DNA of 64,000 bases from Oculina patagonica. Taxonomy: Eukaryota. Positions within the stretch are counted from its first letter, which is position 1. Every line of letters begins with the position of its first letter. The position numbers and the translations under genes are program-made. The notes under the pieces were generated by a model. It saw nothing but the letters and a program-made list of their open reading frames with translations, made no database searches and was not told the DNA's origin. The stretch lies in the NCBI RefSeq assembly GCF_052425735.1, contig NC_135764.1, positions 6,820,001-6,884,000 of the forward strand. The letters run 5' to 3'. Below are positions 24,932-27,689 of this stretch, piece by piece.

Positions 24932-25324
24932 CTAACTAGCCTTTGAAATAAACTCAAAGCTATACAGAGGCTTGAAAATGTCCTGCCACAACTCTAGGGC
25001 AGTCTCTTCGTCCAGTGCTTGCAAGTCAACCTTGAACTCGAAATATTTAAATCCTGGCGGCGACTCCATCTGTAATTCTGTAAGACTTTTTCGCTGCCTC
25101 CTCACTAACCCATCCATGCTTCTTTGGATGTAGCGTTCAATTGCTCCTTCGCTTACACAGAATTTTTCTTGACGTTCGAGATGTTGGAAGTTCATCTTGT
25201 TCATCTGTGGCACAGCTCTCCTTTTCTCTGCGAGTTTTGTTTGATTACTTTGCAAATCACCAAATATTTTTTCATTTTCTTTTCTGTTCACTGGTATTAC
25301 CATTTTCGTTTTAAATGCTCCCAT
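24932..25324 (-). CDS. Uncharacterised 130-aa intronless protein, paralog A (MGAFKTK... PPGF...LWQDIFKPLYSF)
   Basis: Complete ORF with TATAAAG on the minus strand at 25437-25443. Shares 25 of 46 residues, ungapped, with the C-terminus of the ORF at 27327-27689, which supports real coding status. Confidence 0.75.
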   Translation of the reverse strand: MGAFKTKMVIPVNRKENEKIFGDLQSNQTKLAEKRRAVPQMNKMNFQHLERQEKFCVSEGAIERYIQRSMDGLVRRQRKSLTELQMESPPGFKYFEFKVDLQALDEETALELWQDIFKPLYSFEFISKAS

Positions 25325-25589
25325 TTTAAATCAAGAAGCAACAAATCAGTTTTGAAGAAGTCACAGTAAAATTTTTCACTGAATTGACCACAAAATTGCG
25401 AAGACCAGACTGATTGATGTACAAGCTCGCCGTATGCTTTATAATGTCACAGAACTCCTTTTTACGCAAGTCACAAAGCAATCAATCAAACAAACTTATT
25501 TCAACGAGAGTAACGCGTAATAATTAAAAAGCTAATACATTTGTCGCCCTCTAACAAATTTGTGGATCTCCGCTAACACGTTATAAAAG

Positions 25590-27050
25590 TAATAGCGTTT
25601 TATTGACGCAAAAAAGGTAAAACGACATAAAAACAACAGTTCTTATGCCGCAAAAGGTGCATTACGTCATAAAATCAACAGAGTTTTACAGAAGCAAAAG
25701 GAGTATTATATCATAAAAACAACAGAGTTTAGTTTTACTGACGCAAAAGGAGTATTACGTCATGAAAACAACAGAGTCTCACAGACACAAAGAGAATATT
25801 ACGTCATTAGAACAACAGAGTTTGACATACGCAAAGAGAGTATTAGGTGGTGAAAATAGCAGTTCTACTGACGCAAAAGTAGTATTAAAATCATAAAAAA
25901 ATAAATATTCGTGCAAGATTTAGTCAATTCTAAAAGCCAAACTACACAGTCATTTATTCCCCCCCCCCCCTTATTTATACTTGAATTTACTCGATGATGC
26001 CATTGTCAGGGCTCATGATTTTTTATTCATGTGGTTTTGTGTGACTGTGTATAAACAACAGCAAACGTAATCTATGCGTACGGACGGACGGATGATCACG
26101 TGACAACCGATATTTTTCAGCTGGATGGGTTTACCAAATTTTCTTAGATATGGGGCTCCGCTCGGTGCGCTCGGGATCTCTGCTCATACGTCATAAAAAT
26201 AATACGCAAAAAGAGTATTACGTCATAGAAATAACAGTTCTACTGCCGCGCAAAAGGAGCATTACGTCATAAAAATAACAGAGTTCTACTGGCGCAAAGA
26301 GAGTATTTCGTCGTAAAAATAATAATGTAGTATGCAGTACCTAGTGTAATTTAGTAATAAAGTTAAGTACCTGATGTGAGTATGCAAGGGTAGTGAGTTT
26401 GTAAGCTTTCTTTTTAAGTTTATGTAACGGTGTTTAAATAAGATTTCTTTTGAGAAAATATAAACATAATAGAGTTCTTCTGACACGAAAAGAGTATTAT
26501 TGTCATAAAAAATAAACTACTGACGTGAAAGGAGAATTACAGCTCACTGATAAAGCTCTTCTTACGTCAAATTCAGTTCTGCACACGCACTGCATTTCAG
26601 TCCATCATCAGTCATTACCATGGTAACGAAACAAACATTGTAATGTTTTTTTAAGCGATAATCGTTTGTGAGTTTTGAATAAACACACTGCATTTCAAGG
26701 AGCATGTGCGACAAAAAAGAGCCAATAGAAATAGCTAAGTTAGCACACGTGACTGCGACAAGTTGCGCAAGTTGTGGCAAGTTGCGCAATCGTACTCGGA
26801 CCTGCGTATTACGCTCGTTTTCACCTGTCAACTGAATTGCTAAATTTGCCTTTTGAGCGAAAAACATACATACACCATGCACAGAGTATTACGTCATAAA
26901 AATAATAGAGTTCTTCTGACGCAAAGTGTATTACGTCACAAAAATAACAGTTTCGCTAACGCAAAAGAGGGTTACTGTTACAAAAATACTACGGACGCAA
27001 AACTGGCATCAAAATTAAGCTCTACTGACCTCAAAATGTGTTTTACATAA
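25590..27050. repeat. Degenerate ~43-bp minisatellite in four blocks, each unit with TGACGCAA-N8-TTACGTCA
   Basis: Consensus approximately AGAGTATTACGTCATAAAAACAACAGAGTTCTACTGACGCAAA. Blocks at ~25590-25900, 26187-26325, 26465-26540 and 26883-27050; roughly 17 units by eye. Confidence 0.85.
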
Positions 27051-27066
27051 GTGCTGTACTTTAGAT

Positions 27067-27280
27067 AGCCAATAGAAAAAGCTAAATAAGTTCACGTGAC
27101 CCAGATCCATTACGCGCACTGCCTGTTTGGCAAGTTACGCAATCGTATTCTGAGCTATAAAGCAAACCTCGCTTGGCAAGTTCAGCAATCGTATTCCGAG
27201 CTATAAAGCAAACCTCGCTTGGCAAGTTCAGCAATCGTATTCTGAGCTATAAAGTGTACTTCACGCTTTCACCTGTCGCC
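27067..27280 (+). promoter_or_regulatory. Core promoter of paralog B: CCAAT, CACGTGAC, GTTACGCAAT, three TATAAAG in a 46-bp tandem repeat
   Basis: TATAAA at 27156, 27202 and 27248 (period 46). The upstream module is a diverged copy of 26720-26830. Confidence 0.7.
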
Positions 27281-27326
27281 TTGTCAAAGACCACCTAAAT
27301 TGCTGGCTGTGATTTCTCGATCCAGA

Positions 27327-27689
27327 ATGGGAGCGCGTTTAACAAAACCAACGGGCAGAAAAGAAAAAAAAGTGAAATCGTTCGGTGATCGGCAGCGAAG
27401 TAGCCAGGAGGGAATGGTCGAGAAACAGGAGAAAGGACGCGTGGGGAAGGTGAACATGCTACAACGTCGAAAGCGATCTTGTTCTGTCATAGAGGAGGAT
27501 AACAGCAACAACGACATGCGATGCAGCGCGGATGGATCAGCCAGAAAGCGCAAGACTCTTCAAGAATTACACATGGACCCGCCTCCTGGATTCAGAAAGT
27601 TCGAGACTGAGGTGGACTGGAGAACAATTGACGAGGGAATTGCTATTCAACTGTGGGAGGATGTTTTTAGGCCACTGTACACGTTTTGA
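27327..27689 (+). CDS. Uncharacterised 120-aa intronless protein, paralog B (MGARLTK... PPPGF...LWEDVFRPLYTF)
   Basis: ATG at 27327 in good context (AGAATGG), TATA boxes upstream, AATAAA at 27705, and homology to the ORF at 24932-25324. Confidence 0.78.
   Translation: MGARLTKPTGRKEKKVKSFGDRQRSSQEGMVEKQEKGRVGKVNMLQRRKRSCSVIEEDNSNNDMRCSADGSARKRKTLQELHMDPPPGFRKFETEVDWRTIDEGIAIQLWEDVFRPLYTF

Follow-up and report, generated by a model that had tools for sequence, protein, structure and literature searches.

A divergent pair of small intronless genes in Oculina patagonica represents an undescribed stony-coral protein family with a putative lipid anchor

Small N-myristoylated, polybasic anchors and adaptors are known from several systems, including the N-terminus of Src, MARCKS and the small AKAPs smAKAP and AKAP7-alpha. 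Lineage-restricted genes have often been proposed to lie behind coral-specific traits, and few of them come with a structural or mechanistic handle. Here, two small genes, designated A and B, were analysed in a stretch of 64,000 nucleotides of the genome of Oculina patagonica (contig NC_135764.1, positions 6,820,001 to 6,884,000 of the forward strand; this whole stretch is referred to as the window, and its coordinates are counted from its first letter). The pair had been pointed out in an earlier reading made from the letters alone (the sequence-only reading). With moderate confidence in the explanation as a whole, A and B are considered to be real, anciently duplicated, intronless protein-coding genes of an undescribed family, which has been found so far only in stony corals.

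Genes A and B and the family to which they belong

The two genes have the following features:

24932–25324, minus strand: gene A, intronless coding sequence of 130 amino acids plus stop; N-terminus MGAFKTK; conserved C-terminal domain (C-domain) at approximately residues 78–125
27327–27689, plus strand: gene B, intronless coding sequence of 120 amino acids from the ATG plus stop; N-terminus MGARLTK
Gene B, residues 1–72 and 75–120: predicted disordered, basic region and predicted three-helix domain, respectively
27705–27710, plus strand: poly-A signal AATAAA of gene B

Both open reading frames (ORFs) lie where the sequence-only reading had placed them and point away from each other across a spacer of 2002 bp. 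BLASTP comparison of the two proteins showed similarity from end to end (42% identity across 127 amino acids, E 9e-27), and the described gapless alignment of the last domain was recovered, with 25 of the 46 C-terminal codons encoding identical residues (54%) and 34% identity in the N-terminal part. A and B have diverged to saturation at synonymous sites (dS 1.3–1.6), and a separate ortholog of each was identified in the read sets of one other species, namely contig L001 for A (69% amino acid identity) and contig L015 for B (86%); the duplication is therefore old, as had been proposed. A maximum likelihood tree of the domain likewise places B inside a well-supported clade of 46 rows from which A is excluded; A pairs with member P0001, while P0002 and P0017 also fall outside the B-type clade, in a basal grouping that is weakly supported, and a third large clade comprises longer forms. 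Collinearity with the window spacer was seen for the 5' flanks of both L001 and L015, each matching one of its ends, so the divergent arrangement is probably shared.

Ratios of nonsynonymous to synonymous differences (pN/pS) were obtained from Nei-Gojobori counts, with p values from one-sided Fisher tests:

B against L015: pN/pS 0.21 (p 5e-7); C-domain 0.06 (p 1.6e-7)
B against L014, a contig carrying another B ortholog: pN/pS 0.49 (p 5e-4); C-domain 0.26 (p 0.011)
A against L001: pN/pS 0.58 (p 0.033); C-domain 0.25 (p 0.051)

Gene B is clearly under purifying selection. Gene A is probably under constraint, its counts being small: the C-domains of A and L001 differ by four nonsynonymous and four synonymous changes, nonsynonymous sites being four times as many. 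The N-terminal halves evolve faster (pN/pS 0.4–0.9), that of A giving a result that is not significant. The purifying selection attributed to both paralogs in the sequence-only reading thus holds strongly for B and marginally for A. A further A-type copy, at 320–690 of contig L007, possesses an MGARATK start that is out of frame with its C-terminal domain owing to a frameshift near 430–440, and represents either a pseudogene or an assembly error.

Gene B is transcribed at a low level, with an mRNA estimated at approximately 450 nt. Contigs covering it were found in runs X1 (27298–27696) and X3 (27445–27683), with zero depth on the unique DNA to either side; the first of these starts approximately 44 nt past the last TATA box. 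The RNA label of X1 and X3 is guessed, as it is for X14, X35 and X37, while X8 and X9 are poly-A tag libraries, in which neither gene was found. Five sites distinguish two allelic B contigs, three of them synonymous and two nonsynonymous. At codon 104 (27637) the X1 allelic contig carries GAA (Glu), which is the family consensus, where the assembly carries GGA (Gly); the other variants near this codon are three synonymous changes and T94A.

A phmmer search with B against 1.84 billion representative sequences returned 41 clusters at 50% identity, and a profile search returned 129 clusters at 90% identity, all those listed having E < 1e-19. Among the members, names are carried only by hypothetical or uncharacterised proteins from Pocillopora damicornis, P. 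meandrina and O. patagonica; the remainder stem from unlabelled assemblies and coral metagenomes. The family hidden Markov model (HMM) matched A (E ~1e-26) and B (E ~1e-29) and no third copy in the window, and gave matches of E 1e-26 to 1e-30 in loci of at least four other assemblies. A-type copies are present in at least three assemblies. The part shared among members is the C-domain of approximately 50 residues, with three invariant positions (L, F and W) and some ten more that are near-invariant; A and B carry this set (L, L, P, G, F, A, L, L, W, D, K, L and F) and are members on that basis.

The sequence-only reading had not recognised the family, and no well-described family could be assigned to it by Pfam, the PDB or fold comparison. 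Neither A nor B had a Pfam match at the gathering threshold, and among 40 aligned members no Pfam family was matched by more than one at E < 1. Profile search of PDB sequences gave UBE2L6 as its sole match (E 0.64 over 19 residues, KxLxELxxxPP); identity as an E2 ubiquitin-conjugating enzyme was rejected, this match being at chance level and the domain too short for the UBC fold. The literature search found no paper naming the P. damicornis members pdam_00015529 or pdam_00015436, and a search combining coral, myristoylation and restricted genes gave nothing relevant. A feature search of the ESM Atlas was uninformative (top score 0.70, unnamed plant clusters).

In P. meandrina (locus L010), three family copies lie just 3' of the last exon of a gene encoding NtA, TSP1 and EGF domains, the exons of which are collinear with 41149–36178 of the window, minus strand. 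The presence of a family cluster beside the NtA/TSP1/EGF gene in both corals indicates a conserved neighbourhood. The arrangement of the copies differs: those of Pocillopora are tandem and convergent, while in the window a flavin monooxygenase (FMO) gene stands between the pair and the NtA gene. Two tandem family copies were also seen in L008, from another assembly. Of the three P. meandrina copies, the two intact ones are separated from the NtA gene by a broken third (7463–7771 of L010), in which a single open frame holds two incomplete pieces of the domain. Beyond the cluster, on its other side, 22334–22483 of the window resembles 18883–19146 of L010 (41% over 58 translated residues). This segment was considered as a second synteny anchor; it contains a stop codon, looks non-coding and was not used as a marker; it is probably either repetitive or a conserved non-coding sequence.

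Protein architecture and the putative membrane anchor

The start MGA-x-x-[TA]-[KR] is common to all ten MG-type copies that were read at genomic loci (nine of them intact, that of L007 being frameshifted further on), and it is the sole conserved element of the fast-evolving N-terminal half. The N-myristoylation pattern PROSITE PS00008, applied at the N-terminus as M-G-{EDRKHPFYW}-x-x-[STAGCN]-{P}, fits A, B, each of the ten genomic-locus copies and 43 of the 54 family members with an MG start. In several MG-start members, residue 4 is a Cys that could be palmitoylated. In the long-form subfamily, the MG start is replaced by a basic-hydrophobic stretch with Cys-Cys, a feature that looks like another type of membrane anchor. 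Transmembrane segments and signal peptides were not found in the sequence.

The two parts of the proteins differ in charge, with isoelectric points of approximately 10 for the N-terminal halves and approximately 4.5–4.8 for the C-domains; the first 25 residues of B carry a net charge of about +6. Directly ahead of the C-domain stands the motif [KR][KR]x[ST]L, in which S/T is found in 37 of 44 members, K/R at position -2 in 36 and L at +1 in 43. This motif fits the general consensus of basophilic kinases and is a candidate phosphorylation site.

AlphaFold2, run with the family alignment, modelled residues 1–72 of B as disordered and residues 75–120 as three helices (pLDDT > 90), and the domain of A modelled alone adopted the same three-helix topology (pLDDT 86–88). 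The PDB (Foldseek, VIA-align 2 wide), AlphaFold Database (AFDB) clusters, AFDB Swiss-Prot and the ESM Atlas were searched with two models, that of full-length B and that of the A domain; matches to structures, whether solved or predicted, did not rise above noise, the sole real match being a P. damicornis member of the family itself. The top Foldseek match in the PDB for both models was the UBA domain of Dcn1 (2l4e; E 8.1–9.5, TM 0.30–0.31, 28–30 columns). The C-domain resembles UBA/CUE-type domains in its length of approximately 45 residues, its three helices and the conserved Gly-aromatic loop that follows helix 1; unlike them, it gives no significant superposition on solved UBA/CUE structures (E 8–9.5, TM ~0.3). 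VIA-align 2 (top Z 3.1–3.8) returned no UBA among its best rows, and with the 2l4e match at noise level a UBA/CUE-like identity was rejected as unsupported. The acidic C-domain is thus confidently modelled as a three-helix unit without a detectable fold or sequence relative.

Judged by these sequence features, there is a somewhat better than even chance that A and B are small membrane-tethered adaptors or regulators of a stony-coral family. The N-terminal glycine would be myristoylated, and the lipid tail together with the basic, disordered first half would keep the protein at the cytosolic face of the membrane. The [KR][KR]x[ST]L motif before the domain could act as a switch for a basophilic kinase. 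The compact, acidic, strongly selected C-domain of approximately 45 residues would be the effector, possibly gated by phosphorylation, and presumably binds a partner or its own copy.

Several points weigh against this interpretation of the locus. The lipid-anchor mechanism is built on a sequence consensus, and a nuclear role would also be compatible with a KRK cluster ahead of an acidic-hydrophobic helix. In four runs no reads support gene A, and the RNA support for B consists of contigs of low depth, drawn from runs that are guessed to be RNA. The selection signal of A is only marginal (pN/pS 0.58, p 0.033). Finally, noncoding DNA of the window is 79–81% identical to that of the L001/L015 species, about as conserved as coding DNA, so motif conservation in these two contigs is weak evidence.

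The corresponding alternative is that A and B are soluble nuclear or cytosolic regulators, in which KRK/RKRK would serve as a nuclear localisation signal, the LDEExALQLWEDIF helix would be transactivation-like or cofactor-binding, and the MG start would be unlipidated or conditionally lipidated. The basic cluster immediately ahead of an acidic amphipathic helix, the largely disordered protein and a sequence free of transmembrane segments and signal peptides would all suit such a role. However, MGA-x-x-[TA]-[KR] is strictly retained in an otherwise fast-evolving N-terminus, the different N-terminus of the second subfamily is also membrane-anchor-like, and the C-terminus is modelled as a compact three-helix unit and not as a lone peptide. 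A nuclear or cytosolic role is for these reasons regarded as unlikely.

Promoters and the minisatellite-bearing spacer

Between the two coding sequences the following features were identified:

25325–25480, minus strand: 5' untranslated region (5'UTR) and core promoter of gene A, with TATAAAG at 25443–25437 and the C/EBP-type site TTGCGTAA at 25469–25462
25578–25899, plus strand: minisatellite block 1, with 7.3 copies of a 44-bp unit (71% matches); a TGACGCAA-like and a TTACGTCA-like site in every unit
25900–26189: unique part of the spacer, including a poly-C tract; collinear with the region 5' of the A ortholog
~26190–26325, plus strand: minisatellite block 2, approximately three units
26470–26545, plus strand: degenerate minisatellite units (families D3, D4 and D6)
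26720–26888, plus strand: distal copy of the B promoter, with CCAAT, CACGTGAC, two TTGCGCAA sites and the start of an old 5'UTR; TATA lost; aligned with the upstream regions of L015 and L014
26886–27010, plus strand: minisatellite block 3, inside a 425-bp insertion (26889–27313) relative to L015
27067–27326, plus strand: proximal B promoter, with CCAAT at 27069–27073, CACGTGAC at 27093–27100, TTACGCAA at 27135–27142, TATAAAG at 27156, 27202 and 27248, and a short 5'UTR

As described in the sequence-only reading, each gene possesses a TATAAAG box with a TTGCGYAA-type site 13–18 bp upstream. In A this is TTGCGTAA, which reads TTACGCAA on the plus strand and lies 18 bp from the box; in B it is TTACGCAA or TTGCGCAA, the TTACGCAA of the proximal promoter standing 13 bp ahead of the first of three boxes. 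The A ortholog in L001 retains the TATA box and the C/EBP site in the same order and with the same 18-bp spacing, while L007 shows TACGTCAG, a CRE-half-site variant, at the position of this site. The proximal site of B is also found in L014 and L015. By its sequence, the conserved proximal site is C/EBP-type (RTTGCGYAAY-like) and not a cAMP response element (CRE).

Gene B additionally possesses CCAAT and CACGTGAC, which are kept across three species. Its module of CCAAT, CACGTGAC, (G)TTGCGCAAT and TATAAAG is alignable in L014 and occurs twice in the window; L015 lacks TATA at that position. The distal copy is probably the ancestral one, since it is collinear with L015 (blastn of 26679–26888 against 33–243 of L015, 81% identity). 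The 425-bp insertion contains minisatellite units and the second, proximal copy, which is probably the active one, the start of the RNA contig fitting it. A 46-bp tandem repeat at 27127–27264 (2.8 copies, 95% matches) triplicates the TATAAAG of B; in its copies 2 and 3, decay has turned the C/EBP-type site TTACGCAA into TTCAGCAA. In L014, which is more distant, alignment is confined to the promoter module and two short stretches that match minisatellite-like units. Among these comparisons the L014 one alone amounts to phylogenetic footprinting, and it is the better evidence for the promoter module.

The spacer had been described in the sequence-only reading as filled with a CRE-bearing minisatellite. 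The 44-bp repeat is real; its four blocks occupy about one third of the 2002-bp spacer, in which no perfect CRE (TGACGTCA) was found. The bZIP-type sites present are TTACGTCA, TGACGCAA, TTGCGCAA and TTACGCAA, those of the minisatellite being CRE/C-EBP hybrids. The spacer holds 16 of the 25 bZIP-type 8-mers of the window, and TTACGTCAT was observed six times against 0.38 expected; these are not independent events, as the copies arise by repeat amplification. The array is old, given that degenerate units are also found upstream of the B ortholog in L014 (at 625–880, 380–630 bp from the gene). The unique segment between blocks 1 and 2 aligns with L001 (blastn of 26170–25902 against 41–285, 78.7% identity); its poly-C tract at 25958–25972 has as its counterpart in L001 a shorter G run on the other strand. 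A scan of metagenomes for the minisatellite unit gave ten single chance matches and was uninformative on its genome-wide copy number. The possibility that the minisatellite is an amplified, decayed core promoter (44- against 46-bp period) was rejected as unproven: alignment with the B unit was no better than shuffles (890/2000), and that with the A promoter was weak (40/2000 shuffles) and driven by one 9-mer.

In the regulatory part of the favoured explanation, each gene possesses its own TATA promoter with the C/EBP-type site 13–18 bp upstream, to which B adds conserved CCAAT and CACGTG; the minisatellite is an array of hybrid bZIP half-sites persisting 5' of B in several species. The sequence-only reading went further, proposing a co-regulated, rapidly inducible two-gene module under stress, light or clock bZIP factors acting via the shared minisatellite. 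Both genes are indeed short, intronless and TATA-containing, both keep the TATA box with its TTGCGYAA site in a shared TATAAAGCAWAC context (a score reached by 12/2000 shuffles), the CACGTGAC and CCAAT elements of B are retained in three species, and bZIP-type 8-mers recur 5' of A/B-type genes in L001, L014, L015 and L008. However, such sites are absent within 1 kb of the Pocillopora, L012 and L013 copies, block 1 could not be aligned with L001, and the enrichment stems from repeat amplification and not from independent gains. Co-induction or co-expression is unsupported, since B is present in X1 and X3 where A has zero depth; the scant RNA data lean against such a module, which is considered improbable.

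The same RNA data bear on whether only B works, A being a silent or decaying duplicate with a frame that is open by chance or under recently relaxed constraint. Gene A has zero depth in X1, X3, X8 and X9, and in three further runs guessed to be RNA (X14, X35 and X37) only 7–17% of its sampled words are present (0.07–0.17); its marginal pN/pS, the non-significant N-terminal half and the frameshifted copy of L007 point the same way. Against this, the frame of A is intact in the window and in L001 at a synonymous divergence of ~0.3, its C-domain has a pN/pS of 0.25, L001 retains the MG start as well as the TATA box and the C/EBP site, and A-type copies occur in several assemblies. That B alone is functional is thus judged distinctly unlikely.

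Chance ORFs or transposable-element cargo, to which the high-copy repeats flanking the pair (23600–24867 and 28450–29225) might point and which the sequence-only reading had named as an alternative in the form of a high-copy transposon, are effectively refuted by the purifying selection, by the lack of any transposase or reverse-transcriptase domain among the findings, by the presence of only two family-HMM copies in 64 kb, and by the neighbourhood conserved with P. meandrina, which rules out a high-copy mobile element.

Upstream of the pair lies a gene encoding a SPOP-like BTB/BACK protein (15866–17358, plus strand), and downstream the FMO gene (29105–33839, plus strand). High-copy repeats were located at 23600–24867, 28450–28643 and 28838–29225; these are matched by hundreds of RNA-run contigs at 92–95% identity, with many loose ends at 24518, 24867, 29013 and 29047. 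A palindromic hairpin at 29002–29083 matched plant and animal microRNA models on both strands, far under thresholds, and looks like a miniature inverted-repeat transposable element. Rfam analysis of 23000–29500 gave no match in the pair or the spacer. A 106-amino-acid ORF on the minus strand (26562–26882), which overlaps the distal B promoter copy and lacks a Pfam match, is probably spurious.

Significance and comparison with known systems

The pair defines a conserved, selected family that has mostly been missed by automatic annotation, and the family HMM could add many overlooked small genes to coral annotations. It offers a testable prediction, comprising a myristoyl anchor, a kinase site and a new three-helix domain, and the compact promoter suits reporter work; the significance is moderate for now. 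A more far-reaching interpretation, which is put forward as a speculative and distinctly doubtful one, is that these proteins are stony-coral lipid-anchored signalling adaptors with an unseen three-helix fold, clustered by the NtA/TSP1/EGF matrix gene since before the sampled coral lineages split, and expressed from a conserved C/EBP/PAR-bZIP and E-box promoter with a self-amplifying bZIP array as enhancer. If true, the family would be an output of stress or the clock that is specific to this lineage and linked to coral-specific biology.

The closest described proteins are pdam_00015529 and pdam_00015436 of P. damicornis, CAH3130488.1 of P. meandrina and ACROYT_G020432 of O. patagonica, which belong to the same family as A and B. 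They share with them K-K-x-[TS]-L-x-E-L-x4-P-P-G-F-x-K-F-E...L-D-E-E-x-A-L-Q-L-W-E-D-I-F-K-P-L and, in many cases, the MGA start, and the P. meandrina copies adjoin the same NtA/TSP1/EGF gene as the window pair. They differ in being 35–45% identical to A and B, and are themselves uncharacterised; Pocillopora has three copies, two tandem and two convergent, and the Oculina protein is a long form with a repeated domain.

With promoters of the immediate-early or stress type (TATA with C/EBP, PAR or ATF sites), the locus shares compact intronless genes, a TATA box and an RTTGCGYAAY-like site directly 5' of it, B adding CACGTG and CCAAT. This resemblance is one of promoter grammar only, the RNA data showing B without A. 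As regards the small myristoylated anchors, no sequence or fold homology of A and B to Src, MARCKS, smAKAP or AKAP7-alpha was detected, lipidation is here predicted only, and by eye their last helix departs from the amphipathic-helix pattern of AKAPs. What they have in common with these proteins is the overall design: an MG start fitting the N-myristoyltransferase consensus, a disordered stretch rich in K/R, a very small size and a helical interaction element near the C-terminus.

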